DNA of 64,000 nt from NCBI GenBank assembly GCA_950097015.1, contig CATNEN010000005.1:3844001-3908000 (forward strand). The letters are read 5' to 3'. The stretch's first letter is position 1. Each line of letters starts with the position of its first letter. The notes under the pieces were generated by a model, which saw nothing but the letters and a program-made list of their open reading frames with translations, was not told the DNA's origin and searched no databases. The position numbers were made by a program, and so were the translations under genes. The stretch comes from Macrostomum hystrix. Its lineage: Eukaryota; Animalia; Platyhelminthes. This document shows, one piece after another, positions 1-49,257 of this stretch.

Positions 1-34
1 CTGTCGTTACTAAATTTCTATTTCAATAATACAG

Positions 35-23352: not shown

Positions 23353-26300
23353 CTAGTTCTTCCTGATGAACCGTATGGTTCCGCTTTGCAGGTTTTTCTG
23401 CTGACCTAGTAGGAAGTCCAATTCATATGCCTCCGGACGGCCTGGGAATTGAACTGCCACCCTGCAGCTCCCTGCTCCCTGGATGTAGGCTTGGTACGCC
23501 TGTTGAATGCGCGGCTGGGCCAGGCTCTCAAACGGCTGCCAGATGCCACTCTCAGAACGGAACTCCCAGGTGTTCGTCACACTGTCTACGTGAACTTGTT
23601 GGCGCTGAATTGGGCGAATATAGCCAGTTTTAGAGTTCTTCTGTGTGTTTACAGCATAGCTGATGATGTACTGCTGTGGAATGTCATCAATGTAGCGTAT
23701 TATCGCAGGAGTAGTAATCTCAGAAGGTCCGCCCCTCGTCTTGTGCGCATCGTAGTGTGTTTCTAGAAGACGATTAATATCGTCATTGTAGGGCTCAAAG
23801 CTGCCATTGTCCTTCAACCAATGCCATCTGAATGGCGAAGTCCATTTGTCGTTGTCGCTTCTATCAGAGCTTACGCAGGAGGGTTTAATAAAGTCGATTC
23901 GCGGAGTTGTAGAATCAAAGTAGACAACCAAAACTGGGAGATTAAACGCCTTTGAGCCATCAGTTGGGTTGTTCACAACGTAGCAAAACCCGGGCTGATG
24001 ACTGATAGGGCCTCCTTGCAGCAAGAAGGCAACAATCATCGCGCCGCAGTTTCGTGTGTAGCCTCTTGAAATGCTTGGAGACACACCAAAGTATTCTCCT
24101 GGACCACAAGCTTGACCCGATCGTCTTTTCGGATCGAATCCATAGTGAGAGATTTGCTTGAGTGCCTCGGCAGAACTTCCATGGTAGGCGAAAAATCCAT
24201 CAGATTCGCTCAAAGCGCCACGACCCAGTGAAAGCAAACCGCAAACAAAAGCTTTGAACGCGGGGCACTGAGGGTCGCTAAGCAGTCCGGGATTCGGGTC
24301 GATCGCGCGGATTTGTGGCATATCTGCGGGCCAGTTCTTCCGGACGAATACTTCGGCTGCTTTGATCAGTTGCGAATTCCTTCCTACCATTGTGCTTGCT
24401 GACTTAAACTGCGCGCAGTCTCTGTCCTTATGAAGGATGTCGTCGACTGTTTTGCAATCGGCACAGACCCAGTGCTGACAGCTGGAGCATTGTTCGTATG
24501 CGTTTTTCTTTACAAAGCCGTCGCAGCCTCTCACGATACAGCAAGCGATATCCATTGACTTATCTTGAGCAACGTGCTGAGCAACAATCTGTTTGACGAG
24601 GGCTTCAAAGTCCAGTGCTAGCCTCTTTATTTCATTAATGGAGATCTCCGTCTGGCACTTCGGGCAGCAGATTGGGGTCGCCGTGGCACTTTGAAGCCAG
24701 CTTTTGACGCATCTGCAGAACGAGTGACCGCATACAAAGAAACTCTCTGTAGCTGTTTCAGAATTGCAGAGGACGCAAGTCTTTGTTCCGAATTTCTTTT
24801 TGCCACCAAGCTTGCTAATTAGATCAGTCAGTTCCTTGACACAAGGTGAAATAACTTGTGCATCGTTTCGAGCGTAAATTTCTATCTCTGAGCTATGGAA
24901 TAGAAACTTGATGAAACACTTGTCATCCCACTTCTTCTGCAGATCCTTCATCATCGAGTCTCCAGCAAGTCCTCTTCGAAACAACTGAGCTGTGGCAGCG
25001 TCCAGGGGAATGAGGCGATATCGACTCTCGATTTTAGCGAACTCGTCAGCAATGTTCCGCATGAGGGTGCCTTGGCTTACTTTTGGTCCGAAAACTCGGA
25101 AGCTCCGATCGTCTTTAAATTCACACGCGAGCTTCAGCTCGTTCATCCAGCGATCGAAGAGGCCAGAATTCTTGATTTCGAAAAACAGTGTCCTCTCTTT
25201 GCTAGAGAAGTAGCGAATCGTGGTCGGTAAGAACAGTCCTCGAAGCTTGTTAGCCACAAGATTAGTTTTGTCATGATCAGGACCAAACAGTCTGATCTCC
25301 AGCGTACCATCGGGTTTCTTGCTTTCAGCGTGTGTGACAGTGGCATCGCATGAGCGTACAATGAGGTCCTCAAGATCAGGAAACAGATTGCTGTGAGACA
25401 CATAAACTGAAGCGCACCATTCGGCTAAGAAGTTTGGAATCGATCCCTCGCGAGCCTTGTTGAAGAAGCTGATCGCACTTTTCGAGTCGCGAAACTTTAT
25501 GTCAAACTTCTCCTGCGTTACCTTTTCCTCATAGCACTTTACTTCTGGCGAAACGGTTTTAGTGAAGGGCCTTCCGTCACTCTTTCTTTGCAGCTGAATT
25601 TGAAACGGCTCAATTGACTGAACAACCTTCGACAAACTGGCCAGTGAGTCGCCTTGATCCGCACCGCCAACTCTAACAAGCGCACTGGATGACCCTATGC
25701 TGGCTTGCTTTGGTGGGTAAAAATGTATCATTGTACTCGCTTGTCCGAACTCAGCAAGGCTTATTAACTCTTTCACATTGGCCTCTGTCCAATGGGCAGG
25801 CAAGTTTAATATTTTAAAGCTTTTGCTTTCGCGACCGCGTCGGTTTTTGTTGACATGGCGAATTTTGTCGATTGATTCACTTATTGTGCGGATTTGCGAT
25901 TCATCAGTGCCAAAGGGTGCGGTCAAGAGAAGCTGCGTTAGGCCATTGCTAGTACCGATGCATTCTCCATCATCGCTTTCATGCTGATGTGGTCGCAAAG
26001 AGATATTTTCAGAACGTGTTGACTTAACGAAAATAAATTTTTCCACTCGAAGGCCACCAGAGAGTGTGACCTTGTAAATTTCCTTAATTGCAACTTCAGT
26101 CTCTTCTTTCAATAAGCGACGCCTCCTGTCGATTAATAAAGACTTTAAAACAGTTTGAAGCTTCTGCTTGTCCGTGCTTTTACCGAAGACGTGCAAGCTT
26201 GCTTCGTCGGCATTGTGCGACAGAACAATCCACTTTCTCTGTTCTTCTGTGAGTTGCGACTTGTTGCTAAAAATCTCATCTTTGAGAAGTCTGAAAAAAT

Positions 26301-29300
26301 TAGCGCTTACGTTTTGCTCAGTGAAGAGCGTTTGCAGTGGGTGCGATTGTCTATCAGAAATAGTCTTTGGATCTCTCACTGGGTGCAGACAGTCCACCAT
26401 GTACATCCCAGACACAGCTTGAATCACTCGCATAGCAATAAAGTACTGGCAGTCTTGCGCGCGCTGCGCAAAAACTGATGTGTTTGAAATTCGCGCTCGA
26501 ACGTCGGAGGTGAGGATTTTCACACCCTCTGAAGGTAGGTGCCGTACCAGCAGGCATGACACCTGCTCAGGCAGTACTTGCTCAAGGCAGCTGCTCACGA
26601 CGAAAACTGCGTCCTCGCAGTTACTCTCGACCTGGCACTCGGAGAACCACCTGCTGTTCTTAATAGTTTTCAGGATAGAGTTTCGTGACTTGTCAATGTG
26701 CTCTATGACCTTGTTGTTAAGTTTGTTTGCGTTGCTGTGTCCAACACGGCACGACCTACAGCTGTCCTGGAACTTTCTAGCTGCCTTGCCACAGTCAGCG
26801 CACCTGCCACCAACGAGTTTTCCGGAAGAGGCCCAGGAATCGAAAACGCTGACCTCGTACAGAATGTCGCTTTCGTAACCAAAAACCTCCAAGGCTCTCT
26901 TCTGCAGAGCCGCACTTTTCTCTTTGTCGCGTCCGAGGAAGAAGAGACTGCCAGGAGCTGTGAGAATGCAAGCAATCGTAGTCGCCAGACCCAGCTGATC
27001 GAAGCGCTGATGCGCTCTGGCTACGAAAGCGCTAAGACGAGGATCGAGTCCGAGCTCAGCGAATAGCTCGCCAACCTGAGACAGACGCCCTGAATTCTCT
27101 CTAGTCAGACAGTCAAGATCCACCAAAGTCTGGTACGAGTAGACAAGCATATCTTCGCTTGGTTTATCGAGAAATGGAAAGTCAAGTGGCCTTAGCTTCA
27201 GCTTGACGAGCTGCAAAATAACCAGATCAAGTGATGAACGCAGGATTTCAGGAATAAACTGCGCATTTCTCACTGTCTCCTCAGCGTACAACCGCACGCA
27301 GTGCCCAGGAGCAGTTCTGCCAGCGCGACCCTTTCTCTGATCCGCAGCGGATTGTGAAATCTGCTTCAGCTCAAGCACTGTGATGCGCCTCTTTGCGTCG
27401 AACCTGGACTCCTTGGCCAGTCCGGAGTCGACCACCAACCTCACTCCGTTGATGGTCAGCGATGTCTCAGCTACGTTGGTGCAAAACGCAATCAGGCGAT
27501 CTGAATCTTGACTGGGCTTGAAGTCGAGAACCTTCATCTGCTGATCTCTTGGCAGTGATCCATAGAGAGGCAGCGCGACCCAGTTGTCTTCCGTTCGCTG
27601 CTGCTCGAAGGCCTTGATTGCCTCCTGGATTTCCTTCTCACCTGGAAGAAACACGAGAGCGTAGCCTTCAGTGTGAGTCGTCAGCACTCTAACCAGATTT
27701 GGCACCAGATGGCTAATAATGAACTTGTCTGGGTTCCCTTCTGCAGTAGGAGGAATATATTCCAGTGAGACGATATGCATTCTACCTGGAATCTCAAGTA
27801 CATCGCAGTTGAAAAAGTCTCTGAATTGCTTTGGATCGATTGTGGCTGATGCGATGACTACGTAAAAGTTGTCAGGCCTCTTATTGCGAATGAGCTTGGC
27901 AAGGCCTAGGACAATGTCAACGTTGAGCGATCGTTCGTGGGCTTCATCAATGATTAGAACGGATACATTGTTCAAAGAATCGTTGTCCTGGCAATATCGA
28001 ATCAGACAGGCTTCCGTCATGAACATAATGTCTGTGCCCAGTGTACTATTGTCGCCACCCACCTTGAAGCCGACGGACTCGCCCACATCGCATCCGTCGA
28101 ACTCGTCGGCCACTCGCTGAGCGATGGAGATTGCAGCCATCACTCGCGGCTGTGTGCAGATAACGAGGCCTCCGAAGTACTCCGCCGCGTACTGTGGCAG
28201 CTGGGTGGTCTTGCCGCTGCCCGTCTCCGCTCTGACGATCAGAACTTTCTCCTTCTGGAGTCGTTGAAGGAATTCGTCCCGACAACTCAGCACTGGCAGT
28301 TGGTTGGCCTCTCTATCGATTCTTCTCTGGTGCTCCGATTTGAGCGATGAGCTTCTCAGTGGCTTGAAGGCGTGCTGAACCTTGCTCATCTCCGGATGAA
28401 GGCGGCTGCACTCCCTGTCTGAGCAGTCGCTTCCCTGAGGACAGGGCACGGGTCGTCTTGGAGAGTGAGTACAAGAGCAGCTAACATCGCGGCATCCAAG
28501 ACCGTCTGGACATGGATTCCAGGCCTCAGCGTGCAGTCCTTCGCAGTTTTGATTCCAGCATCGCTCTCGAAACTTGCAAGGCTTGACTCTTCCGGGCGGA
28601 TGCAGCTCAGAGCAATCGATCTGATCACACTTCTCACCCAACTTGCAAACAGCTCTATTTTTAGGATGAAGCCAAGGACAGAATGCAAGCTTGCATTTTG
28701 AACCCGACCGGCACTTCTTTAATCTTCCATGGTCGTGGAGCTTCTTGCAATCAAAGTCGGAGCAAGTCTTCTTGTTTTCGCAGACCTGTCTACTGATGGG
28801 GTGAAGCAGCTCACAATGGACATCCGAGCACTTGGCCTCCTGCCCACATAGCTTCTTCCGTGATGCGGAATGCAGCTTTGTGCAGTCGAATTCTTCGCAC
28901 ATGTCTCCGACATCACAGATGTTTCGGCTGACTGGGTGTAAGAAGCGGCATTCGACATTGAAGCACTTGTCTCCGAATCGGCAAGGCCTACTCCGACCAA
29001 TCGGGTGGCTCTTCTGGCACTGCAAGTCATCACAGTCCACCGAGCATTCGTTGGGATCTGAGAAGGCGCTTCCCCAGCCAAGTGGGTGTCCGAAATAGCA
29101 AGTAAAATCTTCACATTCTTCACCTTCGGAGCAACCGATGTGCTTGAATTGACACTGTGAATCGTATTTGCATATACCTGATCGATAGAAGATGCACAGA
29201 CGCATTTCTCCTTCCGCCTGCGCTTCTTTTTCTGTCTTCACGCCTGGCGAGTGTCCTAGACAACACTCATCGTCATCGCAATCTTTGTCCGAAGGGCAGG

Positions 29301-30381
29301 CAAAATGAATGCGACCGCAGGAATCACATAAAAAGCAATTTCCTGTGATATTTTGTCTGCATAATGTCCACTTAGTCTCAGGCACGGAGCTTATGGCATT
29401 AGCCCCAAGTCTCTCACTTTGTCTCAAAAGTGTGCTCTCGCCGGCGTCGCCGGTGAGTGTATTGATCGAGCATGGCTTTGCAGACCTCTTCAGCTTACAA
29501 TTAACAACAAACTCGGTGTCTTTAATTTTGTAGCCTTTCCATTGGGATATAAATCTTTGTGCATCACTTTCTGTTTGTCCGTTTAAGAAGGCGCACCAGG
29601 CAGCTCTGTTTCGCTGCTTGGATTCAGGCAGCACAATAAACCTTTCTGCCGGTTTTCCGAATGTCGCTTCTAGGAAGTCAACAGAAACTTTTGGCGGTAG
29701 CCCTGAAATTTCGACGGTACAGCTCAAGGTCTCGTTTAGCTGCTGGGCAATTTCAGCTTCTTGAGATTCCACAGTTTGTTTCCAAACCAGTTGACATTTT
29801 ATTTTGGTTTGTGTTCCCGGTATGAGTTGATTGTTCCACTTTTTCTGAAACTGACTGGCCTCATCCATAGTGAGATTATTCAGATAAGCACACCATGAAT
29901 TTTTATCGCGCTGTTTGTCCTCAGTAGGTACAAAAAATTCGCCAGTGTTTTGTCTTAGCAATGAGGCAAGGTCGTCTGCACGCGATTTCGGCGGCAGACC
30001 AAGTATTTGTACATTTGCTTTCTCCGGCTTTTGGAAAGGGGTCTTCGGATTCAAATTTTGATGTTTTGCAGAAGCGTCGCGACTTCTGTTTACCTGACAT
30101 TCTACTTTGTTGGATGTTCCGGGAAGTGTCATTTTGTTCCACTTTCTCTGAAATTCGTCCGCCTCCTCTTCAGTGAGTTCGTTGAGGAAGGCGCACCAGG
30201 CATTTTTATTCCGCTGTTTGGTCGCATCGAGAACCACAAACCTACCGGCTCGTTGGTTAAAGCTTGCGCGAAGCTTTTCAGGTGTCACACCAGGTGGCAG
30301 TCCTGTGATCTGAACGCTGCACAGCCTGACCTGCTGAGCACCGGACGCAGAGCGCATGAGTGGAGGCGGCAGTGACGCCAT
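23353..30381 (-). CDS. 2342-aa intronless multidomain protein (copy 1): 3x RRM-like, 14x CCCH ZnF, DEAH RNA helicase + HA2/OB-like, RRM/KH-like, RING-IBR, PARP-like ART, 2x WWE
   Basis: Uninterrupted 7029-nt ORF. Motifs: V.I.GLPP repeats; C-x5-C-x4-C-x3-H array; AETGSGKT, TQPR, DEAHER, SAT, TNVAETSLT, QRKGRAGR; CVLC..CGHSFC..CPKC; YHGS..GEYFG..SRGY; WHWLKDNGSFEPY and WEFRSESGIWQPF. Confidence 0.93.
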   Translation of the reverse strand: MASLPPPLMRSASGAQQVRLCSVQITGLPPGVTPEKLRASFNQRAGRFVVLDATKQRNKNAWCAFLNELTEEEADEFQRKWNKMTLPGTSNKVECQVNRSRDASAKHQNLNPKTPFQKPEKANVQILGLPPKSRADDLASLLRQNTGEFFVPTEDKQRDKNSWCAYLNNLTMDEASQFQKKWNNQLIPGTQTKIKCQLVWKQTVESQEAEIAQQLNETLSCTVEISGLPPKVSVDFLEATFGKPAERFIVLPESKQRNRAAWCAFLNGQTESDAQRFISQWKGYKIKDTEFVVNCKLKRSAKPCSINTLTGDAGESTLLRQSERLGANAISSVPETKWTLCRQNITGNCFLCDSCGRIHFACPSDKDCDDDECCLGHSPGVKTEKEAQAEGEMRLCIFYRSGICKYDSQCQFKHIGCSEGEECEDFTCYFGHPLGWGSAFSDPNECSVDCDDLQCQKSHPIGRSRPCRFGDKCFNVECRFLHPVSRNICDVGDMCEEFDCTKLHSASRKKLCGQEAKCSDVHCELLHPISRQVCENKKTCSDFDCKKLHDHGRLKKCRSGSKCKLAFCPWLHPKNRAVCKLGEKCDQIDCSELHPPGRVKPCKFRERCWNQNCEGLHAEAWNPCPDGLGCRDVSCSCTHSPRRPVPCPQGSDCSDRECSRLHPEMSKVQHAFKPLRSSSLKSEHQRRIDREANQLPVLSCRDEFLQRLQKEKVLIVRAETGSGKTTQLPQYAAEYFGGLVICTQPRVMAAISIAQRVADEFDGCDVGESVGFKVGGDNSTLGTDIMFMTEACLIRYCQDNDSLNNVSVLIIDEAHERSLNVDIVLGLAKLIRNKRPDNFYVVIASATIDPKQFRDFFNCDVLEIPGRMHIVSLEYIPPTAEGNPDKFIISHLVPNLVRVLTTHTEGYALVFLPGEKEIQEAIKAFEQQRTEDNWVALPLYGSLPRDQQMKVLDFKPSQDSDRLIAFCTNVAETSLTINGVRLVVDSGLAKESRFDAKRRITVLELKQISQSAADQRKGRAGRTAPGHCVRLYAEETVRNAQFIPEILRSSLDLVILQLVKLKLRPLDFPFLDKPSEDMLVYSYQTLVDLDCLTRENSGRLSQVGELFAELGLDPRLSAFVARAHQRFDQLGLATTIACILTAPGSLFFLGRDKEKSAALQKRALEVFGYESDILYEVSVFDSWASSGKLVGGRCADCGKAARKFQDSCRSCRVGHSNANKLNNKVIEHIDKSRNSILKTIKNSRWFSECQVESNCEDAVFVVSSCLEQVLPEQVSCLLVRHLPSEGVKILTSDVRARISNTSVFAQRAQDCQYFIAMRVIQAVSGMYMVDCLHPVRDPKTISDRQSHPLQTLFTEQNVSANFFRLLKDEIFSNKSQLTEEQRKWIVLSHNADEASLHVFGKSTDKQKLQTVLKSLLIDRRRRLLKEETEVAIKEIYKVTLSGGLRVEKFIFVKSTRSENISLRPHQHESDDGECIGTSNGLTQLLLTAPFGTDESQIRTISESIDKIRHVNKNRRGRESKSFKILNLPAHWTEANVKELISLAEFGQASTMIHFYPPKQASIGSSSALVRVGGADQGDSLASLSKVVQSIEPFQIQLQRKSDGRPFTKTVSPEVKCYEEKVTQEKFDIKFRDSKSAISFFNKAREGSIPNFLAEWCASVYVSHSNLFPDLEDLIVRSCDATVTHAESKKPDGTLEIRLFGPDHDKTNLVANKLRGLFLPTTIRYFSSKERTLFFEIKNSGLFDRWMNELKLACEFKDDRSFRVFGPKVSQGTLMRNIADEFAKIESRYRLIPLDAATAQLFRRGLAGDSMMKDLQKKWDDKCFIKFLFHSSEIEIYARNDAQVISPCVKELTDLISKLGGKKKFGTKTCVLCNSETATESFFVCGHSFCRCVKSWLQSATATPICCPKCQTEISINEIKRLALDFEALVKQIVAQHVAQDKSMDIACCIVRGCDGFVKKNAYEQCSSCQHWVCADCKTVDDILHKDRDCAQFKSASTMVGRNSQLIKAAEVFVRKNWPADMPQIRAIDPNPGLLSDPQCPAFKAFVCGLLSLGRGALSESDGFFAYHGSSAEALKQISHYGFDPKRRSGQACGPGEYFGVSPSISRGYTRNCGAMIVAFLLQGGPISHQPGFCYVVNNPTDGSKAFNLPVLVVYFDSTTPRIDFIKPSCVSSDRSDNDKWTSPFRWHWLKDNGSFEPYNDDINRLLETHYDAHKTRGGPSEITTPAIIRYIDDIPQQYIISYAVNTQKNSKTGYIRPIQRQQVHVDSVTNTWEFRSESGIWQPFESLAQPRIQQAYQAYIQGAGSCRVAVQFPGRPEAYELDFLLGQQKNLQSGTIRFIRKN

Positions 30382-40235: not shown

Positions 40236-40685
40236 ATTCCTTCTCGCTTTTGTGGCTACTCAGTGAACAAAGCTTGAAGGTATTGCTGGTCATGTTTCAA
40301 AACGGAAAATGTATAATTTACTTTTTTGTATTGCAGTATGGATCATTGGACATGCGTGCCGAGCCTTTCTCTGTTGCCCTTATGATTTTATTTATCGTTT
40401 AGATGCTTCGTTTCGTTCTGAACAAACAAAATCGTTCAGCATCGTCCTTCAAATAGAATTAACAAAAACAAGCGTTGGGGTAAAATTACTTTAGAAATTA
40501 TTCCGAATTGCAAACTTCTGGAAAGGCTACATTATACCACAAGCATCACCTTCACATAATCTTTGTCATGCTACTCGCAGAAGAAATGAACGTTTAGTTA
40601 GCAACAATTTATTGCAAAAGTAGTATTGTAGAGTGCTGAGTAAATAGTTTATGCAAAAAGCTATTTCAATCAAAATTCTTCGCAG

Positions 40686-43600
40686 ATGGCGTCACTGCCG
40701 CCTCCACTCATGCGCTCTGCGTCCGGGGCTCAGCAGGTCAGGCTGTGCAGCGTTCAGATCACAGGACTGGCACCTGGTGTGACACCTGAAAAGCTTCGCG
40801 CAAGCTTTAACCAACGAGCCGGTAGGTTTGTGGTTCTCGATGCGACCAAACAGCGGAATAAAAATGCCTGGTGCGCCTTCCTCAACGAACTCACTGAAGA
40901 GGAGGCGGATGAATTTCAGAGAAAGTGGAACAAAATGACACTTCCCGGAACATCCAACAAAGTAGAATGTCAGGTAAACAGAAGTCGCGACGCTTCTGCA
41001 AAAAATCAAAATTTGAATCCGAAGACCCCTTTCCAAAAGCCGGAGAAAGCAAATGTACAAATACTTGGTCTGCCGCCTAATTCAAGAGCAGAAGACCTGG
41101 CCTCGAGATTAGGACAAAAAGCTGGCCAATTCACGGTGCTTCCTGAGGACAAACAGCGCGATAAAACTTCCTGGTGTGCCTATCTGAACGGTCTCACAAT
41201 TGATGAGGCCAGAGAGTTTCAAACGAGGTGGAACAACCAGCTGATACCAGGAACAGAAACTAAACTAAAATGTCAGGTGCTTTCGAACAGAGAAACAGAG
41301 GAACCCAAAGTAGCTAAAACTTCTCAGCAGCCAAACTGCAGTGTCAAAATTTCAGGACTACCACCAAATGTTTCAATTAGCTTCCTGAAAACAATATTCC
41401 GACAGCGGGCCGATCAGTTTGTTGTGCCTCCTGAATCCAAACAGCGAAACAAGAACGATTGGTGCGCTTTTATAAATGGACTTTTAGACAGTGAAGCGCA
41501 AAGTTTTGCATCTCAATGGGATCTCTACAAAATAAAAGACACCCAGTTTGTCCTGCATTGTAAGGTGAAGAGGCCAGTGAAAGCAACACCCATCAATCTG
41601 AGCAATAAACCTGGCCCTAGCTCAGTCAGTAGCACACTTTTGAAGCAAAGCGAGAGACTCGGGGCAAGTGTTACAAGCTCCATGTCTTCTGTGTGCACAA
41701 CACAAAGCGATTTGCCTAAGAGAAGGGGCACGCTGTGCAGACACAATATCACGGGCACCTGCAAATTCGGTGATGACTGCCAGAACATTCATTTTGCCTG
41801 CCCTTCGGACAAAGATTGCGATGACGATGAGTGTTGTCTAGGACACTCGCCAGGCGTGAAGACAGAAAAAGAAGCGCAGGTGGAAGGAGAAATGCGTCTG
41901 TGCATCTTCTATCGATCAGGTATATGCAAATACGATTCACAGTGTCAATTCAAGCACATCGGTTGCTCCGAAGGTGAAGAATGTGAAGATTTTACTTGCT
42001 ATTTCGGACACCCACTTGGCTGGGGAAGCGCCTTCTCAGATCCCAACGAATGCTCGGTGGACTGTGATGACTTGCAGTGCCAGAAGAGCCACCCGATTGG
42101 TCGGAGTAGGCCTTGCCGATTCGGAGACAAGTGCTTCAATGTCGAATGCCGCTTCTTACACCCAGTCAGCCGAAACATCTGTGATGTCGGAGACATGTGC
42201 GAAGAATTCGACTGCACAAAGCTGCATTCCGCATCACGGAAGAAGCTATGTGGGCAGGAGGCCAAGTGCTCGGATGTCCATTGTGAGCTGCTTCACCCCA
42301 TCAGTAGACAGGTCTGCGAAAACAAGAAGACTTGCTCCGACTTTGATTGCAAGAAGCTCCACGACCATGGAAGATTAAAGAAGTGCCGGTCGGGTTCAAA
42401 ATGCAAGCTTGCATTCTGTCCTTGGCTTCATCCTAAAAATAGAGCTGTTTGCAAGTTGGGTGAGAAGTGTGATCAGATCGATTGCTCTGAGCTGCATCCG
42501 CCCGGAAGAGTCAAGCCTTGCAAGTTTCGAGAGCGATGCTGGAATCAAAACTGCGAAGGACTGCACCCTGAGGCCTGGAATCCATGTCCAGACGGTCTTG
42601 GATGCCGCGATGTTAGCTGCTCTTGTACTCACTCTCCAAGACGACCCGTGCCCTGTCCTCAGGGAAGCGACTGCTCAGACAGGGAGTGCAGCCGCCTTCA
42701 TCCGGAGATGAGCAAGGTTCAGCACGCCTTCAAGCCACTGAGAAGCTCATCGCTCAAATCGGAGCACCAGAGAAGAATCGATAGAGAGGCCAACCAACTG
42801 CCAGTGCTGAGTTGTCGGGACGAATTCCTTCAACGACTCCAGAAGGAGAAAGTTCTGATCGTCAGAGCGGAGACGGGCAGCGGCAAGACCACCCAGCTGC
42901 CACAGTACGCGGCGGAGTACTTCGGAGGCCTCGTTATCTGCACACAGCCGCGAGTGATGGCTGCAATCTCCATCGCTCAGCGAGTGGCCGACGAGTTCGA
43001 CGGATGCGATGTGGGCGAGTCCGTCGGCTTCAAGGTGGGTGGCGACAACAGTACACTGGGCACAGACATTATGTTCATGACGGAAGCCTGTCTGATTCGA
43101 TATTGCCAGGACAACGATTCTTTGAACAATGTATCCGTTCTAATCATTGATGAAGCCCACGAACGATCGCTCAACGTTGACATTGTCCTAGGCCTTGCCA
43201 AGCTCATTCGCAATAAGAGGCCTGACAACTTTTACGTAGTCATCGCATCAGCCACAATCGATCCAAGGCAATTCAGAGACTTTTTCAACTGCGATGTACT
43301 TGAGATTCCAGGTAGAATGCATATCGTCTCACTGGAATATATTCCTCCTACTGCAGAAGGGAACCCAGACAAGTTCATTATTAGCCATCTGGTGCCAAAT
43401 CTGGTTAGAGTGCTGACGACTCACACTGAAGGCTACGCTCTCGTGTTTCTTCCAGGTGAGAAGGAAATCCAGGAGGCAATCAAGGCCTTCGAGCAGCAGC
43501 GAACGGAAGACAACTGGGTCGCGCTGCCTCTCTATGGATCACTGCCAAGAGATCAGCAGATGAAGGTTCTCGACTTCAAGCCCAGTCAAGATTCAGATCG

Positions 43601-46600
43601 CCTGATTGCGTTTTGCACCAACGTAGCTGAGACATCGCTTACCATCAACGGAGTGAGGTTGGTGGTCGACTCCGGACTGGCCAAGGAGTCCAGGTTCGAC
43701 GCAAAGAGGCGCATCACAGTGCTTGAGCTGAAGCAGATTTCACAATCCGCTGCGGATCAGAGAAAGGGTCGCGCTGGTAGAACTGCTCCTGGGCACTGCG
43801 TGCGGTTGTACGCTGAGGAGACAGTGAGAAATGCGCAGTTTATTCCTGAAATCCTGCGTTCATCACTTGATCTGGTTATTTTGCAGCTCGTCAAGCTGAA
43901 GCTAAGGCCACTTGACTTTCCATTTCTCGATAAACCAAGCGAAGATATGCTTGTCTACTCGTACCAGACTTTGGTGGATCTTGACTGTCTGACTAGAGAG
44001 AATTCAGGGCGTCTGTCTCAGGTTGGCGAGCTATTCGCTGAGCTCGGACTCGATCCTCGTCTTAGCGCTTTCGTAGCCAGAGCGCATCAGCGCTTCGATC
44101 AGCTGGGTCTGGCGACTACGATTGCTTGCATTCTCACAGCTCCTGGCAGTCTCTTCTTCCTCGGACGCGACAAAGAGAAAAGTGCGGCTCTGCAGAAGAG
44201 AGCCTTGGAGGTTTTTGGTTACGAAAGCGACATTCTGTACGAGGTCAGCGTTTTCGATTCCTGGGCCTCTTCCGGAAAACTCGTTGGTGGCAGGTGCGCT
44301 GACTGTGGCAAGGCAGCTAGAAAGTTCCAGGACAGCTGTAGGTCGTGCCGTGTTGGACACAGCAACGCAAACAAACTTAACAACAAGGTCATAGAGCACA
44401 TTGACAAGTCACGAAACTCTATCCTGAAAACTATTAAGAAGAGCAGGTGGTTCTCCGAGTGCCAGGTCGAGAGTAACTGCGAGGACGCGGTTTTCGTCGT
44501 GAGCAGCTGCCTTGAGCAAGTACTGCCTGAGCAGGTGTCATGCCTGCTGGTACGGCACCTACCTTCAGAGGGTGTGAAAATCCTCACCTCCGACGTTCGA
44601 GCGCGAATTTCAAACACATCAGTTTTCGCGCAGCGCGCGCAAGACTGCCAGTACTTTATTGCTATGCGAGTGATTCAAGCTGTGTCTGGGATGTACATGG
44701 TGGACTGTCTGCACCCAGTGAGAGATCCAAAGACTATTTCTGATAGACAATCGCACCCACTGCAAACGCTCTTCACTGAGCAAAACGTAAGCGCTAATTT
44801 TTTCAGACTTCTCAAAGATGAGATTTTTAGCAACAAGTCGCAACTCACAGAAGAACAGAGAAAGTGGATTGTTCTGTCGCACAATGCCGACGAAGCAAGC
44901 TTGCACGTCTTCGGTAAAAGCACGGACAAGCAGAAGCTTCAAACTGTTTTAAAGTCTTTATTAATCGACAGGAGGCGTCGCTTATTGAAAGAAGAGACTG
45001 AAGTTGCAATTAAGGAAATTTACAAGGTCACACTCTCTGGTGGCCTTCGAGTGGAAAAATTTATTTTCGTTAAGTCAACACGTTCTGAAAATATCTCTTT
45101 GCGACCACATCAGCATGAAAGCGATGATGGAGAATGCATCGGTACTAGCAATGGCCTAACGCAGCTTCTCTTGACCGCACCCTTTGGCACTGATGAATCG
45201 CAAATCCGCTCAATAAGTGAATCAATCGACAAAATTCGCCATGTCAACAAAAACCGACGCGGTCGCGAAAGCAAAAGCTTTAAAATATTAAACTTGCCTG
45301 CCCATTGGACAGAGGCCAATGTGAAAGAGTTAATAAGCCTTGCTGAGTTCGGACAAGCGAGTACAATGATACATTTTTACCCACCAAAGCAAGCCAGCAT
45401 AGGGTCATCCAGTGCGCTTGTTAGAGTTGGCGGTGCGGATCAAGGCGACTCACTGGCCAGTTTGTCGAAGGTTGTTCAGTCAATTGAGCCGTTTCAAATT
45501 CAGCTGCAAAGAAAGAGTGACGGAAGGCCCTTCACTAAAACCGTTTCGCCAGAAGTAAAGTGCTATGAGGAAAAGGTAACGCAGGAGAAGTTTGACATAA
45601 AGTTTCGCGACTCGAAAAGTGCGATCAGCTTCTTCAACAAGGCTCGCGAGGGATCGATTCCAAACTTCTTAGCCGAATGGTGCGCTTCAGTTTATGTGTC
45701 TCACAGCAATCTGTTTCCTGATCTTGAGGACCTCATTGTACGCTCATTCGATGCCACTGTCACACACGCTGAAAGCAAGAAACCCGATGGTACGCTGGAG
45801 ATCAGACTGTTCGGTCCTGATCATGACAAAACTAATCTTGTGGCTAACAAGCTTCGAGGACTGTTCTTACCGACCACGATTCGCTACTTCTCTAGCAAAG
45901 AGAGGACGCTGTTTTTCGAAATCAAGAATTCTGGCCTCTTCGATCGCTGGATGAACGAGCTGAAGCTCGCGTGTGAATTTAAAGACGATCGGAGCTTCCG
46001 AGTTTTCGGACCAAAAGTAAGCCAAGGCACCCTCATGCGGAACATTGCTGACGAGTTCGCTAAAATCGAGAGTCGATATCGCCTCATTCCCCTGGACGCT
46101 GCCACAGCTCAGTTGTTTCGAAGAGGACTTGCTGGAGACTCGATGTTGAAGGATCTGCAGAAGAAGTGGGATGACAAGTGTTTCATCAAGTTTCTGTTCC
46201 ATAGCTCAGAGATAGAAATTTACGCTCGAAACGATGCACAAGTTATTTCACCTTGTGTCAAGGAACTGACTGATCTAATTAGCAAGCTTGGTGGCAAAAA
46301 GAAATTCGGAACAAAGACTTGCGTCCTCTGCAATTCTGAAACAGCTACAGAGAGTTTCTTTGTATGCGGTCACTCGTTCTGCAGATGCGTCAAAAGCTGG
46401 CTTCAAAGTGCCACGGCGACCCCAATCTGCTGCCCGAAGTGCCAGACGGAGATCTCCATTAATGAAATAAAGAGGCTAGCACTGGACTTTGAAGCCCTCG
46501 TCAAACAGATTGTTGCTCAGCACGTTGCTCAAGATAAGTCAATGGATATCGCTTGCTGTATCGTGAGAGGCTGCGACGGCTTTGTAAAGAAAAACGCATA

Positions 46601-47744
46601 CGAACAATGCTCCAGCTGTCAGCACTGGGTCTGTGCCGATTGCAAAACAGTCGACGACATCCTTCATAAGGACAGAGACTGCGCGCAGTTTAAGTCAGCA
46701 AGCACAATGGTAGGAAGGAATTCGCAACTGATCAAAGCAGCCGAAGTATTCGTCCGGCAGAACTGGCCCGCAGATATGCCACAAATCTGCGCGATCGATC
46801 CGAATCCCGGACTGCTTAGCGACCCTCAGTGCCCCGCGTTCAAAGCTTTTGTTTGCGGTTTGCTTTCACTGGGTCGTGGCGCTTTGAGCGAATCTGATGG
46901 ATTTTTCGCCTACCATGGAAGTTCTGCCGAGGCACTCAAGCAAATCTCTCACTATGGATTCGATCCGAAAAGACGATCGGGCCAAGCTTGTGGTCCAGGA
47001 GAATACTTTGGTGTGTCTCCAAGCATTTCAAGAGGCTACACACGAAACTGCGGCGCGATGATTGTTGCCTTCTTGCTGCAAGGAGGCCCTATCAGTCATC
47101 AGCCCGGGTTTTGCTACGTTGTGAACAACCCAACTGATGGCTCAAAGGCGTTTAATCTCCCAGTTTTGGTTGTCTACTTTGATTCTACAACTCCGCGAAT
47201 CGACTTTATTAAACCCTCCTGCGTAAGCTCTGATAGAAGCGACAACGACAAATGGACTTCGCCATTCAGATGGCATTGGTTGAAGGACAATGGCAGCTTT
47301 GAGCCCTACAATGACGATATTAATCGTCTTCTAGAAACACACTACGATGCGCACAAGACGAGGGGCGGACCTTCTGAGATTACTACTCCTGCGATAATAC
47401 GCTACGTTGATGACATTCCACAGCAGTACATCATCAGCTATGCTGTAAACACACAGAAGAACTCTAAAACTGGCTATATTCGCCCAATTCAGCGCCAACA
47501 AGTTCACGTAGCCAGTGTGACGAACACCTGGGAGTTCCGTTCTGAGAGTGGCATCTGGCAGCCGTTTGAGAGCCTGGCCCAGCCGCGCATTCAACAGGCG
47601 TACCAAGCCTACATCCAGGGAGCAGGGAGCTGCAGGGTGGCAGTTCAATTCCCAGGCCGTCCGGAGACATATGAATTGGACTTCCTACTAGGTCAGCAGA
47701 AAAACCTGCAAAGCGGAACCATACGGTTCATCAGGAAGAACTAG
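40686..47744 (+). CDS. 2352-aa intronless multidomain protein (copy 2, inverted paralogue of 23353-30381)
   Basis: Uninterrupted 7059-nt ORF with the same domain order and motifs (GSGKT ~42876, DEAH ~43149, RING ~46319, ART HG ~46914, WWE from ~47265); AATAAA ~100 bp after the stop. Confidence 0.93.
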   Translation: MASLPPPLMRSASGAQQVRLCSVQITGLAPGVTPEKLRASFNQRAGRFVVLDATKQRNKNAWCAFLNELTEEEADEFQRKWNKMTLPGTSNKVECQVNRSRDASAKNQNLNPKTPFQKPEKANVQILGLPPNSRAEDLASRLGQKAGQFTVLPEDKQRDKTSWCAYLNGLTIDEAREFQTRWNNQLIPGTETKLKCQVLSNRETEEPKVAKTSQQPNCSVKISGLPPNVSISFLKTIFRQRADQFVVPPESKQRNKNDWCAFINGLLDSEAQSFASQWDLYKIKDTQFVLHCKVKRPVKATPINLSNKPGPSSVSSTLLKQSERLGASVTSSMSSVCTTQSDLPKRRGTLCRHNITGTCKFGDDCQNIHFACPSDKDCDDDECCLGHSPGVKTEKEAQVEGEMRLCIFYRSGICKYDSQCQFKHIGCSEGEECEDFTCYFGHPLGWGSAFSDPNECSVDCDDLQCQKSHPIGRSRPCRFGDKCFNVECRFLHPVSRNICDVGDMCEEFDCTKLHSASRKKLCGQEAKCSDVHCELLHPISRQVCENKKTCSDFDCKKLHDHGRLKKCRSGSKCKLAFCPWLHPKNRAVCKLGEKCDQIDCSELHPPGRVKPCKFRERCWNQNCEGLHPEAWNPCPDGLGCRDVSCSCTHSPRRPVPCPQGSDCSDRECSRLHPEMSKVQHAFKPLRSSSLKSEHQRRIDREANQLPVLSCRDEFLQRLQKEKVLIVRAETGSGKTTQLPQYAAEYFGGLVICTQPRVMAAISIAQRVADEFDGCDVGESVGFKVGGDNSTLGTDIMFMTEACLIRYCQDNDSLNNVSVLIIDEAHERSLNVDIVLGLAKLIRNKRPDNFYVVIASATIDPRQFRDFFNCDVLEIPGRMHIVSLEYIPPTAEGNPDKFIISHLVPNLVRVLTTHTEGYALVFLPGEKEIQEAIKAFEQQRTEDNWVALPLYGSLPRDQQMKVLDFKPSQDSDRLIAFCTNVAETSLTINGVRLVVDSGLAKESRFDAKRRITVLELKQISQSAADQRKGRAGRTAPGHCVRLYAEETVRNAQFIPEILRSSLDLVILQLVKLKLRPLDFPFLDKPSEDMLVYSYQTLVDLDCLTRENSGRLSQVGELFAELGLDPRLSAFVARAHQRFDQLGLATTIACILTAPGSLFFLGRDKEKSAALQKRALEVFGYESDILYEVSVFDSWASSGKLVGGRCADCGKAARKFQDSCRSCRVGHSNANKLNNKVIEHIDKSRNSILKTIKKSRWFSECQVESNCEDAVFVVSSCLEQVLPEQVSCLLVRHLPSEGVKILTSDVRARISNTSVFAQRAQDCQYFIAMRVIQAVSGMYMVDCLHPVRDPKTISDRQSHPLQTLFTEQNVSANFFRLLKDEIFSNKSQLTEEQRKWIVLSHNADEASLHVFGKSTDKQKLQTVLKSLLIDRRRRLLKEETEVAIKEIYKVTLSGGLRVEKFIFVKSTRSENISLRPHQHESDDGECIGTSNGLTQLLLTAPFGTDESQIRSISESIDKIRHVNKNRRGRESKSFKILNLPAHWTEANVKELISLAEFGQASTMIHFYPPKQASIGSSSALVRVGGADQGDSLASLSKVVQSIEPFQIQLQRKSDGRPFTKTVSPEVKCYEEKVTQEKFDIKFRDSKSAISFFNKAREGSIPNFLAEWCASVYVSHSNLFPDLEDLIVRSFDATVTHAESKKPDGTLEIRLFGPDHDKTNLVANKLRGLFLPTTIRYFSSKERTLFFEIKNSGLFDRWMNELKLACEFKDDRSFRVFGPKVSQGTLMRNIADEFAKIESRYRLIPLDAATAQLFRRGLAGDSMLKDLQKKWDDKCFIKFLFHSSEIEIYARNDAQVISPCVKELTDLISKLGGKKKFGTKTCVLCNSETATESFFVCGHSFCRCVKSWLQSATATPICCPKCQTEISINEIKRLALDFEALVKQIVAQHVAQDKSMDIACCIVRGCDGFVKKNAYEQCSSCQHWVCADCKTVDDILHKDRDCAQFKSASTMVGRNSQLIKAAEVFVRQNWPADMPQICAIDPNPGLLSDPQCPAFKAFVCGLLSLGRGALSESDGFFAYHGSSAEALKQISHYGFDPKRRSGQACGPGEYFGVSPSISRGYTRNCGAMIVAFLLQGGPISHQPGFCYVVNNPTDGSKAFNLPVLVVYFDSTTPRIDFIKPSCVSSDRSDNDKWTSPFRWHWLKDNGSFEPYNDDINRLLETHYDAHKTRGGPSEITTPAIIRYVDDIPQQYIISYAVNTQKNSKTGYIRPIQRQQVHVASVTNTWEFRSESGIWQPFESLAQPRIQQAYQAYIQGAGSCRVAVQFPGRPETYELDFLLGQQKNLQSGTIRFIRKN

Positions 47745-49257
47745 CTGCTTCGTTTGACCTTTACTTAGTACTTACAGTTCTCCATTGGTCGACAAATGTC
47801 CTGAATGTCCCAGCGCTCAAATGTAAAGTGTTCAGAAGATTTAATAAAATCATTCAAGATTGCATCGATAAAGGATAGTAACGAACATATATAGAAGTAG
47901 GAATTATATAACTACTAGGAAAATTCATGCATTCTCACTTTAATGTTGCGTCTTATCATGGATAGAGATCACGTTACTGCGTGTATTACGAGCTAGTATA
48001 TTTCAGGTAATTTTTTTAATTTGAATAACAATTGTTTGCTGGTGAACGGATGCAATATTTTCGTTTTTCAAGTTTTTTCTCAAGTACCACTGGGAGTAGA
48101 ATGACGGGAAACTACATTTCTTAGAAAAATAACTGAAGGCTGGTTTTCGCGATATAATACACGACGGAGATAGAAAGAGGCAGATAGAAAGCTGTTCTAT
48201 TGATTGCCTAACATGTTGCTTATCCGAACGTTATAAAAGTTTTGTACATGACCTATCATAAGTCTGAAATTTAATGCACCACAGACAAATTGAATTTATT
48301 TATTTATACTTTTTCTAAGAAACGTAGTTTCCCGTCCTTCTACTCCGAGTGGTCCCTGGTTTTTCTTTTAAGAAACGCTATAATATTTACCTCATATAAT
48401 ATTTCTATGATTATTTCTTATCTTTGATTTCGCTTTAATTTTCGATATAAAATCACTTTTAATAAATTAAGACTTCTAGTAAAATATCATCATGATCATT
48501 TTTTAATAGGATGGAAGTATAATAACTATTGAGTGGCAGAGGCATTCGTTAAATAATTAAATTATATTTCAAATCGCACGATATTTTACGAGGCTCATAA
48601 TTACGAAATGCTTGTTTTATTCCGAAAATATTTTTCCAATTTTTTTATTCCTGAATCTGAAAGCGCGTATCATTTGTTCTGAAATATATCATGGAATAAA
48701 CTCAACACATAAATTAATCCGAAAAATTCAAAGACGATCGCACCAGATTTTTTCGTTGTATAAAATTAGTTGATCACGCAATTAATTTTGTGATTTATTA
48801 TGGGCATGATACAATGTTCACAGAATGAGCAACGCGTGGACAAAACAGAGTATTGAACTTAGACTGTTGGGTAGTTATTGGGTCCTGATTGAGTGATGTA
48901 TTTTAGAGATTTTAACTCCAGACTCTATTTCAGATGTTGGAAGAATATCTTTGGGAATCGAAGTGAAGGTCAGAGGTGCATGGGGGCGTGTCTTAAGAGC
49001 TCTGAGCAGAAATACATTTTATGTCACCACAACTATAGACAGATAGACTTCAGCAAGATATCATGTTAATACTCAGTTCTTCTGCAAGACAATTCCATTG
49101 CTAGGATTGTACTATTTTATTATAAAAAATGTCGGGTTGTATCCATGCAGGCTTAAATCATGGACCAATTTGAACTACGAGTAAAAGATGGACAAGGAAG
49201 GACACAGATTTCTAAATTAACATATTTGATTGTCTGACATTCGGTTGAGTCCATGAG

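Follow-up and report, generated by a model that had tools for sequence, protein, structure and literature searches.

The 64,000-nucleotide stretch of the Macrostomum hystrix genome analysed here (the window; contig CATNEN010000005.1 of assembly GCA_950097015.1) carries a gene that is real, transcribed and free of introns. It exists in two near-identical copies placed head to head, and its product belongs to an uncharacterised protein family. By the distribution of its sequences this family is ancient and spread over most eukaryotic supergroups, from metamonads and diplonemids to animals. Its predicted modules (Table 1) suggest an RNA-guided helicase that couples ADP-ribose signalling to ubiquitylation, built from an ancient core with CCCH and RRM-like additions in the flatworm, a reading to which we give slightly better than even chances. 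A first-pass annotation made from the DNA letters had described the protein as a fusion of RNA-sensing, helicase, E3 and ADP-ribosyltransferase modules, and sequence profiles or AlphaFold models confirm all of these modules except RRM-like repeats 2 and 3.

Table 1. Features of the gene, its transcript and its second copy (nucleotide positions within the window; residues of the 2352-residue protein).
Feature	Residues	Positions	Strand	Basis or remarks
Approximate transcript		40605..48147	+	about 7.5 kb; 5'UTR about 80 nt, 3'UTR about 350-400 nt; ends extrapolated
Whole open reading frame		40686..47744	+	ATG to stop, 2352 codons plus stop, 2352 aa, intronless
RRM-like repeat 1	17-105	40734..41000	+	Pfam RRM_1, 24.7 bits; repeat alignment
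Paralogue-divergent block	about 110-395	41013..41870	+	RRM-like repeats 2 and 3, linker, first finger
RRM-like repeat 2	121-205	41046..41300	+	47% identical to repeat 1; no Pfam match of its own
RRM-like repeat 3	216-300	41331..41585	+	44% identical to repeat 1
14 CCCH zinc fingers	351-672	41736..42701	+	regular-expression count, Pfam, Nab2 match
DEAH/RHA helicase core (RecA1, RecA2, probable winged-helix/ratchet)	692-1207	42759..44306	+	Prp43/DHX15/DHX8 matches, motifs
OB-like C-terminal helicase domain with inserted zinc ribbon (predicted)	1204-1345	44295..44720	+	zinc ribbon, beta-rich model segment
Middle array of small alpha/beta modules (KH-like or RRM/ferredoxin-like)	1346-1860	44721..46265	+	AlphaFold, pLDDT 76
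RING1 (C3HC4)	1879-1919	46320..46442	+	unusual C-x-C between ligands 5 and 6
IBR	1958-1999	46557..46682	+	invariant C6HC ligands; HOIL-1 IBR and RNF31 IBR matches
PARP-type ART fold	2007-2167	46704..47186	+	triad positions His2077, Tyr2107, Cys2143
WWE domain 1	2191-2274	47256..47507	+	Pfam WWE; DTX1 and TRIP12 alignments; ZAP/DTX1 fold matches
WWE domain 2	2275-2352	47508..47741	+	as WWE domain 1; best Pfam stretch 2281-2350
Paralogue		23353..30381	-	2342 aa, 95% identical, head-to-head, identical domain set

The gene and its head-to-head copy

Because it stays open for 7 kb in DNA of 45-52% GC, the reading frame is not a chance product. The transcript evidence consists of assembler contigs from four public runs (run kind marked '?'), and in three of the four (X1, X2 and X4) contigs of about 7.5 kb cover positions 41200 to 47199 unspliced, with zero differences, gaps or joints; the transcript that the first-pass annotation had presupposed does exist and, together with the intact frame, places all the modules in one polypeptide, as it had proposed. 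The transcript ends were extrapolated from the lengths of these contigs (7541, 7487 and 7493 nt) and their offsets, and contig word depth was comparable (20-41) across all four runs. The paralogue was found in run X3 as well, and the transcript assemblies contain the two copies. We considered the possibility that the two copies are mis-assembled haplotypes; both sequence variants occur in those assemblies, but the inverted arrangement is known from the genome assembly alone.

The two copies diverge almost solely in RRM-like repeats 2 and 3. When copy is compared with copy, dS reaches 0.43-0.63 and dN/dS 0.30-0.42 in the divergent block, while dS is at most 0.03 elsewhere, and the repeat arms shared by the copies are interrupted at this block. 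Judged by these ratios, the block is under purifying and not positive selection. No flank sequence common to both copies was found, the homology being confined to the reading frame, and eight neighbouring reading frames gave zero Pfam matches. A non-functional relic or a gene carried as cargo by a mobile element, that is, a recently dead or selfish copy, would agree with the lack of introns and with copies that share only the reading frame between unrelated flanks. However, neither 7-kb frame is broken, dN/dS stays under 0.5 at the sites that separate the copies, both are represented among the transcripts, orthologues are conserved at great depth, and no transposase, reverse transcriptase or terminal repeats were found with the gene; we therefore disfavour this explanation as extremely improbable.

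RNA-binding modules and helicase core

The three RRM-like repeats at the N-terminus are mutually 44-47% identical, and only repeat 1 exceeds the Pfam RRM_1 cut-off of 20.7 bits, with a score of 28.4 bits in the paralogue. A profile derived from the repeats matched no RRM among solved structures, and their feature matches in the ESM Atlas, which serve as leads only, fall almost all in RRM clusters. The label 'RRM-like' is fair, yet it is the weakest of the module assignments: it is borne out by profile for repeat 1 and is weak for repeats 2 and 3. The CCCH array is as had been described, with 14 fingers mostly of the Nab2/ZC3H14 type; 13 are strict (11 C-x5-C-x4-C-x3-H and two C-x7-C-x5-C-x3-H) and the other is a C-x3-C-x4-C-x3-H variant (residues 456-469). 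The array scores 29.3 bits with Pfam zf-CCCH and 25.3 bits with zf-CCCH_tandem, and its top solved match, over three consecutive fingers, is to Nab2 fingers 5-7 (E 2e-6). A Nab2-type array is common to some members of the family (rotifers, Paulinella). The triple RRM-like head was seen in Macrostomum proteins only, such repeats being present also in a truncated relative from Macrostomum lignano, and by sequence comparison it looks to be the only lineage-specific part.

The helicase core matches Prp43, DHX15 and DHX8 at E ~1e-84 and, in agreement with the first-pass annotation, has every motif intact. The complete set (I, Ia, Ib, II, III, IV, V and VI) comprises AETGSGKT (motif I, residues 728-735), TQPR, TEACL, DEAH (motif II, residue 822), SAT, LVFLPG, TNVAETS and QRKGRAGR. 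Alignment to DHX8, Prp22 and Prp2 extends through residue 1207, and Pfam HA2_N, found in relatives, is absent from the query. For the region that follows we infer an OB fold from its location within DEAH helicases and from a beta-rich segment of the AlphaFold model; it contains a C-x2-C...C-x2-C zinc ribbon (residues 1204-1221) that is kept in the family consensus.

The middle array gave zero Pfam matches, and its matches to solved structures (multi-RRM, KH, ACT) were weak. Its AlphaFold model is most similar to Arabidopsis DEAH12 (F4KGU4) and DEAH11 (P0CE10), at E 2e-16 over model residues 29-607, and the next-ranked matches are vigilin, IGF2BP, DTX3L and PARP14, which accords both with the RRM/KH-like segments read from the sequence and with their proposed likeness to the KH/RRM arrays of PARP14 and DTX3L. 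The inter-domain arrangement is modelled with low confidence (pTM 0.40-0.50).

The C-terminal RING1-IBR, ART and WWE domains

In the single-protein search RING and IBR fell under the Pfam cut-offs, whereas across the family alignment each of their zinc ligands is either invariant or kept in 90% or more of the sequences. The family profile matches the RING1-IBR of HOIL-1 at E 2e-11, Foldseek also matches HOIL-1, and the profile matches of RING1 are HOIL-1, HOIP and TRIM. No conserved Cys/His cluster that could represent RING2 lies between IBR and ART in the family alignment, the AlphaFold model has helices there, and the RING2 of HOIL-1 aligns back only onto the IBR part of the family profile. 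Ligands 5 and 6 of RING1 are spaced C-x-C in Macrostomum and in 26/26 rotifer-like sequences, and C-x2-C in Hydra and 43 others. In RBR ligases RING1 normally passes ubiquitin to RING2. The RING-IBR E3 of the first-pass annotation is thus upheld in its two zinc domains and not as a canonical RBR ligase; as far as the family sequences tell, it is a RING1-IBR without RING2, hence non-canonical, and its predicted E3 activity is uncertain because RING2 is absent and the C-x-C spacing is itself non-canonical.

The tandem WWE at the C-terminus, also foreseen, scores 72.5 bits in Pfam, and its top profile match is the tandem WWE of DTX1 (E 5.9e-15). In the family alignment, columns W369, Y379, E388, Y419, Q428, R437 and R441 of the first domain are invariant, as are W453 and Y500 of the second, in which R496, Q509, N511 and R518 are near-invariant. 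These hallmark residues align with the ADP-ribose/ATP-binding WWE domains of DTX1 and TRIP12, and we take them, from earlier work on RNF146, to be the ligand-contacting ones.

With Pfam PARP (PF00644) the ART fold scores 18.2 bits, short of the 26.7-bit cut-off, and relatives score 18-29 bits, but it stands on other comparisons: the family ART profile matches PARP12 at E 2.6e-9, VIA-align gives a Z of 13.3 over model residues 178-338, with Z 12-13 to PARP15, PARP12, PARP14, PARP10, PARP13 and tankyrase, and Foldseek also supports it. Among 187 family ART domains the NAD+-site residues His2077, Gly2078, Tyr2107, Ser2115 and Tyr2118 are near-invariant (167/170, 165/170, 169/173, 167/172 and 165/172, respectively), and conservation this strong argues for a selected, ligand-binding pocket rather than a decayed one. 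The catalytic position, assigned to Cys2143 from the motif, the order of the strands and how far the structural alignment reaches, and not from coordinates, is Cys in 152/175 sequences, with His in 8, Ala in 6, Gly in 3 and Ile in 1, and Glu, Asp or Gln in 0/175. The third triad residue is accordingly neither the Glu of poly-ARTs nor the Ile, Leu or Tyr of known mono-ARTs, and we know of no described counterpart of a His-Tyr-Cys active site. Furthermore, beta-3 and the catalytic strand are joined by a very short segment, in sequence and in the AlphaFold model.

Lacking the catalytic Glu and with this segment shortened, the ART may not transfer ADP-ribose. It could instead be a pseudo-enzyme that senses NAD+ or ADP-ribose like the inactive ARTs of PARP13 and PARP9, in which case the chemistry would be limited to helicase ATPase and RING-type ubiquitylation, and the WWE pair would recruit the protein to targets ADP-ribosylated by other PARPs. 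Besides the two features just named, Pfam PARP scores below or barely at the cut-off and the presence of PARP13 among the structural matches speak for a pseudo-enzyme. However, PARP13 and PARP9 have lost the NAD+-site His or Tyr, unlike the almost invariant pocket found here, and the active mono-ARTs PARP10, PARP12, PARP14 and PARP15 likewise lack Glu; we regard a pseudo-enzyme as rather unlikely.

The same domains allow a bolder proposal, in which RING1-IBR and the His-Tyr-Cys ART act together as a catalytic unit of a new kind: Cys2143 would replace the RING2 cysteine, take ubiquitin from E2 and hand it on to the molecule that occupies the ART pocket, be it NAD+, ADP-ribose or an ADP-ribosylated RNA end. 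RING2 is absent and RING1-IBR is always directly followed by ART, a Cys on the catalytic strand adjoins an intact NAD+ site in most of the sequences, and the DTC domains of DELTEX proteins demonstrate that ADP-ribose can be ubiquitylated by a RING that adjoins its binding pocket (PMC10810221, PMC12000418). The proposal is purely inferential, however; the His, Ala, Gly and Ile variants at the Cys position count against it, no domain-arrangement model (pTM 0.50) supports an E2 site near Cys2143, and the Cys may be a mere hydrophobic replacement, like the Ile or Leu of other mono-ARTs. We consider it improbable, although if true it would make RING1-IBR and the His-Tyr-Cys ART an unrecognised catalytic supradomain from early eukaryotes, and the protein an enzyme that writes ubiquitin-ADP-ribose on proteins or RNA ends at sites set by its own helicase and RNA-binding arrays, a one-chain predecessor or counterpart of the PARP14-PARP9/DTX3L and Deltex systems.

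An ancient family

At E<1e-30, 130 clusters share the core layout, in which a DEAH/RHA helicase with a predicted OB domain is followed by the array of small alpha/beta modules, RING1-IBR lacking RING2, a PARP-fold domain and two WWE domains in tandem. Members include bdelloid rotifers, which have multiple paralogues, Hydra, oomycetes, Pelomyxa, Paulinella, a chrysophyte, a diplonemid and Chilomastix, and none of them carries an annotation beyond 'RNA helicase' or 'hypothetical'. The family is absent from most animals, and there are no fungal or plant members among the named matches. The idea that the modules had merged once, in this animal, has to be given up for the stretch from helicase to WWE. 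RING1-IBR-ART is found in every long member, with WWE, CCCH and RRM variable in presence, and by this comparison the RING1-IBR-ART core is conserved more strongly than any accessory.

When the C-terminal 520 residues of 37 sequences are placed in a maximum-likelihood tree, the flatworm protein falls in an unsupported, long-branched polytomy, so that the tree is uninformative on vertical versus horizontal origin, and the one-residue RING1 deletion shared with rotifers is the only hint, at the sequence level, of a common flatworm-rotifer ancestry. ESM Atlas clusters gave no good match to the C-terminal module (best 0.78). Searching the literature on the architecture, on DEAH11/12 function and on Macrostomum PARPs, we found no paper characterising this architecture; in that sense the novelty claimed for it holds, although its core is widespread. 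The PARP-family surveys of Citarelli 2010 and Perina 2014 mention neither helicase, IBR nor DEAH and do not list the family, an omission for which the sub-threshold Pfam score of its ART is the probable reason.

Comparison with known systems

Plant DEAH11 and DEAH12, which stand for the RBR subfamily that Marin named 'Helicase / Plant I' (PMC2904391), resemble the flatworm protein in having a DEAH helicase, a long middle region and then RING1-IBR, and the middle-region model matches their residues ~800-1477. Each group is old and has a patchy distribution marked by repeated loss. Nevertheless, DEAH11/12 are described with a full RBR (RING1-IBR-RING2) and without PARP or WWE, whereas in the flatworm protein RING2 is missing and ART and two WWE domains follow the IBR, so the plant layout suggested earlier fits as far as the IBR and no further. 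No plant DEAH11/12 was among the 120 best long helicases in the helicase-region search, where bacterial HrpA came directly after the family; the plant link therefore derives from predicted structure only.

ZAP (PARP13) and PARP12 likewise unite CCCH fingers with tandem WWE and with a PARP-fold domain that lacks Glu, in a single chain, and the central domain of ZAP and the catalytic domains of PARP12 and PARP13 are among the best structural matches. The ZAP/PARP12 layout assigned by the first-pass annotation agrees in its WWE and ART and departs in order and finger type: ART precedes WWE-WWE here, whereas WWE precedes ART in ZAP, PARP12 and PARP14, the fingers are Nab2-type and not ZAP-type, the third triad residue is Cys, and helicase and RING1-IBR are added.

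PARP14, which acts together with PARP9/DTX3L (PMC11251020, PMC11251048), shares with the flatworm protein the combination of RRM and KH-like arrays with WWE, ART and a RING E3; the KH/RRM content of PARP14 and DTX3L has been described (PMC13224862, PMC11080071). In that system the ADP-ribose and ubiquitin outputs are coupled, with both proteins and nucleic acids as substrates (PMC13224862, PMC11080071, PMC11467253). Published analogues of the activity proposed below are the ubiquitylation of nucleic acids by DTX3L (PMC11467253) and that of ADP-ribose on nucleic acids by DELTEX ligases (PMC10810221). In contrast, the flatworm protein is one chain without macrodomains or DTC, has an RBR-type RING1 with IBR and includes a DEAH helicase. 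Deltex proteins (DTX1/2/4) also join tandem WWE to a RING, but their WWE pair is N-terminal and RING is followed by DTC, which was not found in the flatworm protein by family alignment or structure matches; the flatworm chain ends in its WWE pair and has IBR and ART after the RING.

Prp43/DHX15/DHX8 and bacterial HrpA share the helicase core through the probable ratchet domain, with all motifs, and lack the flatworm N- and C-terminal modules, the predicted OB region of the flatworm protein adding a zinc ribbon. Finally, Nab2/ZC3H14 have the same tandem C-x5-C-x4-C-x3-H fingers, but those of the flatworm number 14 and form an N-terminal appendage of a predicted enzyme, and poly(A) binding by them is putative.

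Proposed function

As an RNA-guided helicase of the kind we favour, the protein would use its RRM-like, CCCH and KH-like modules to dock on RNA that is single-stranded and possibly A-rich, or on an RNP (we infer this specificity from finger type only), and the helicase would move along the RNA or remodel the RNP. The ART pocket would bind NAD+ and could mono-ADP-ribosylate the protein itself, a bound protein or an RNA end; the WWE pair would read ADP-ribose, and RING1-IBR would recruit ubiquitin-loaded E2, so that the marked target or ADP-ribose itself is ubiquitylated. One chain would thus perform what PARP14, PARP9/DTX3L and Deltex ligases do separately. As to its biological role, we find it equally plausible that the protein surveys RNA for foreign or aberrant molecules and that it serves RNP or mRNA turnover in general, each at somewhat under even chances.

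The first-pass annotation had favoured an antiviral or anti-transposon function. A sensor-effector of innate immunity, recognising non-self RNA by its RNA modules and restricting it by its ADP-ribose/ubiquitin output, is suggested by analogy with ZAP, PARP12, PARP14 and DTX3L/PARP9, the nearest analogues, which are interferon-linked antiviral factors (PMC8102003, PMC11251020, PMC11251048). A patchy distribution with repeated loss, as described for the related helicase-RBR group (Marin, PMC2904391), the multiple paralogues of bdelloid rotifers and the two copies in the window, kept identical save for an RNA-binding block, are also consistent with it. On the other hand, dN/dS in that variable block indicates purifying selection and bears no arms-race signature, and catalytic modules conserved over more than five supergroups fit a conserved cellular substrate equally well; we see an immune role as plausible but tentative, at clearly less than even chances. 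Less probable still, and in our view unlikely, is a housekeeping RNP-remodelling helicase of the Prp43/DHX kind, acting in splicing, ribosome biogenesis or mRNA export/decay, whose C-terminal modules are only regulators or turnover tags. The closeness of the helicase core to Prp43/DHX15/DHX8 and HrpA, the Nab2-type fingers known from a housekeeping poly(A)-binding protein and the similar contig word depth in the four runs would fit such a role, but essential helicases are not lost in the manner of this family, missing as it is from most animals and with no fungal or plant member among the named matches, and its best-conserved part, RING1-IBR-ART, is not an accessory.

The coupling of ADP-ribosylation to ubiquitylation, on nucleic acids included, is known from Deltex, DTX3L/PARP9 and PARP14, and the family described here bears on the age of this coupling and on its targeting to RNA. 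It unites in a single chain an RNA helicase, RNA-binding arrays, a putative E2-recruiting RING1-IBR, a domain with a predicted NAD+ pocket and two putative ADP-ribose readers. The family may therefore offer a compact and testable model for RNA-directed ADP-ribose/ubiquitin signalling, with Macrostomum, rotifers and Hydra as animals amenable to knock-down.

Domain composition of the flatworm protein

One ORF of 2352 codons, uninterrupted from ATG to stop, encodes the flatworm protein and lies in a block of 45-52% GC with AT-rich stretches on either side. Every module listed for the protein in the first-pass annotation was found there, the RRM-like ones in divergent form. The three N-terminal repeats share 44-47% pairwise identity; only repeat 1 scored above the cut-off for Pfam RRM_1, a profile built from the repeats matched no RRM among solved structures, and the ESM Atlas feature matches, which are RRM clusters, are at lead level only. 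Therefore, judged on their sequences, these repeats are best termed 'divergent RRM-like'. The CCCH array comprises 14 fingers (13 strict and one C-x3 variant), 11 of them with C-x5-C-x4-C-x3-H spacing, and its top match among solved structures was Nab2 zinc fingers 5-7 (E 2e-6). The helicase core matched Prp43/DHX15/DHX8 (E ~1e-84) and carries motifs I-VI complete. Additionally, a C-x2-C-x11-C-x2-C zinc ribbon, conserved in the family consensus, is inserted where the OB-like region of the helicase begins; we know of no comparable insert in Prp43/DHX-type helicases.

The middle and C-terminal pieces, for which family alignments held 25 and 37 sequences, were predicted by AlphaFold2 with mean pLDDT of 76 and 88, respectively. 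The middle piece had no match in Pfam; its model resembled Arabidopsis DEAH12 and DEAH11 over nearly the full length (E 2e-16), followed by vigilin, IGF2BP, Bicaudal-C, DTX3L and PARP14, and against solved structures it gave weak matches only (multi-RRM, KH, ACT). In the model, this region is an array of small alpha/beta modules.

Coordinates of the features discussed in the text
Feature	Window (strand)	Residues
Main ORF	40686-47744 (+)	
Paralogous ORF	23353-30381 (-)	2342 aa in total
RRM-like repeat 1		17-105
RRM-like repeat 2		121-205
RRM-like repeat 3		216-300
Block diverged between copies, main gene	41013-41870	~110-395
Block diverged between copies, paralogue	29200-30050 (-)	
Helicase core		692-1207
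Zinc ribbon	44295-44348	1204-1221
Middle piece		1190-1830
C-terminal piece		1830-2352
RING1 ligands 5-6 (C-x-C)	46380-46391	1899-1901
Region of skewed composition	1-10000	

RING1-IBR, ART and WWE domains

Foldseek searches of the PDB with the C-terminal model returned the tandem WWE of ZAP and DTX1/Deltex, the RING1-IBR of HOIL-1 and the catalytic domains of PARP12/13/10/16, and VIA-align placed model residues 178-338 at Z 12-13 to PARP15/12/14/10/13 and tankyrase. The family profile likewise matched the DTX1 WWE (E 5.9e-15), HOIL-1 (2e-11), the RNF31 IBR and PARP12. The WWE pair lies C-terminal to the ART, an order reversed in PARP12, ZAP and PARP14.

In the alignment with PARP12/PARP10, His2077-Gly falls on the PARP 'HGT', Tyr2107 ('GEYFG') on the triad Tyr of 'GxYFA', and Ser2115 and Tyr2118 on the nicotinamide-site Ser and Tyr; these five residues are almost invariant among 187 family ART domains. 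The segment from beta-3 to the catalytic strand is far shorter than in human PARPs. The putative catalytic position, Cys2143 in the flatworm protein and thus the third residue of a His-Tyr-Cys site, was placed by the 'FCYVV' motif, the strand order of the model and a structural alignment reaching the end of the PARP domains; it is Cys in 152 of 175 family sequences and Glu, Asp or Gln in none, and the same strand position in PARPs holds Glu, or Ile/Leu/Tyr. Across the family, RING1 and IBR keep their zinc ligands invariant or nearly so (≥90%); no Cys/His cluster that could represent a RING2 follows the IBR in the family alignment, and the RING2 of HOIL-1 aligned back to the IBR part of the family profile. 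That the conserved ART Cys stands in for the catalytic cysteine of RING2 is a possible but unlikely reading, and the most novel one.

Distribution and variation of the family

An exhaustive HMMER search with residues 1200-2352 recovered 620 representative clusters at E<1e-3, of which 130 passed E<1e-30; lengths of ~2000 aa were common. Of the earlier interpretation, the joining of these modules in one protein holds, and the idea that the architecture is unique to this animal does not. Members were found in bdelloid rotifers (Rotaria, Didymodactylos and Adineta, with at least four loci in A. vaga), Hydra vulgaris (LOC136089200), oomycetes (Aphanomyces, Lagenidium), Pelomyxa, Paulinella, the chrysophyte Pedospumella, the diplonemid Namystynia, the metamonad Chilomastix and several deep-branching eukaryotes. 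Among the best 120 long helicases of the sequence search, bacterial HrpA ranked next after the family and plant DEAH11/12 did not appear. In a tree of the C-terminal piece, the flatworm protein fell into an unsupported polytomy.

According to segment coverage, nearly all long members have the helicase, the OB-like region, the middle region, RING1-IBR and the ART, the CCCH array is common to the flatworm protein, rotifers, Paulinella and a few others, and WWE is absent in a subset. A WWE-less subfamily of rotifer and environmental relatives (P0004-P0006, P0022, P0027, P0063 and P0139 in our collected set) ends directly after the ART and retains the His-Gly-Tyr-Ser-Tyr-Cys site; two further WWE-less relatives, P0061 and P0101, have lost these residues. 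Between zinc ligands 5 and 6, RING1 has C-x-C spacing in Macrostomum and all 26 rotifer-like relatives, and canonical C-x2-C spacing in Hydra and the protists; this one-residue deletion is a rare one, present in Macrostomum and all the rotifer-like sequences and in no others.

The RRM-like head was absent from every relative examined outside Macrostomum. In Macrostomum lignano, a 60-65% identical relative with at least two RRM-like repeats is annotated as 'RNA helicase' (PAA62682.1 and PAA84961.1; P0168 and P0092 in our set), and both models end before RING/IBR, ART and WWE. These are probably truncated annotations, which would therefore conceal the architecture in public records.

A paralogous pair and its transcripts

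The paralogue, head to head with the main gene at a spacing of 10.3 kb, encodes a protein 95% identical to the main one, with the same Pfam profile. Identity is ~99% across two tracts and ends no more than 13 nt from the start and stop codons; the 1-kb flanks of the copies have no sequence in common. This ORF-confined identity points either to gene conversion that acted on the coding part alone or to a duplication that arose in an unusual way. The sole diverged part (dS 0.43-0.63, dN/dS 0.30-0.42, 54-77% amino acid identity, several indels) encodes RRM-like repeats 2-3, the linker and the first CCCH finger. The pattern is consistent with an old duplication after which gene conversion homogenised the coding sequence save one RNA-binding block; alternatively, the block was swapped with a third copy. 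The two paralogues may have different RNA preferences.

Elsewhere in the window, the first 10 kb differs very strongly in composition between its strands, GC skew ranging from +0.46 to -0.49 over 2-kb windows, and holds long ORFs that overlap on both strands. Low-complexity or satellite-like repeats typically look like this, and none of these ORFs had a match in Pfam.

The main-gene sequence was found in four public runs. The run type is a guessed label and the evidence consists of assembler contigs only, which we took as RNA because of their transcript-like size and common ends. In three runs one contig (7541, 7487 or 7493 nt) covers 41200-47199 free of differences, gaps and joints; extrapolation puts its ends ~80 nt before the ATG and 350-400 nt beyond the stop. 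In the fourth, the contig breaks at the start of paralogue identity and its loose end matches the other copy exactly. On these grounds, each of the two copies seems to yield an unspliced message.

Implications

Helicase, IBR and DEAH are nowhere mentioned in the PARP surveys of Citarelli 2010 and Perina 2014, and no paper describing the helicase-to-WWE architecture was found in the literature searched. An ancient 'Helicase/Plant I' RBR subfamily has been described, with repeated loss in animals (Marin, PMC2904391). The mechanistic analogues come from recent work: ADP-ribose on nucleic acids is a substrate for ubiquitylation by Deltex ligases (PMC10810221), nucleic acids are ubiquitylated by DTX3L (PMC11467253) and PARP9/DTX3L cooperates with PARP14 (PMC11251020, PMC11251048), RRM and KH arrays being present in both PARP14 and DTX3L (PMC13224862, PMC11080071). 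Beyond the composition, conservation, distribution and transcript documented here, we infer a mechanism in which the helicase would dock on RNA, while the NAD+-pocket domain and the WWE readers would link signalling through ADP-ribose with the recruitment of an E2 by RING1-IBR. The role of the protein could be in defence or in general RNP turnover. The flatworm protein combines known kinds, PARP-like, RBR-like and DEAH helicase, in a family that is widespread and uncharacterised in the literature searched.
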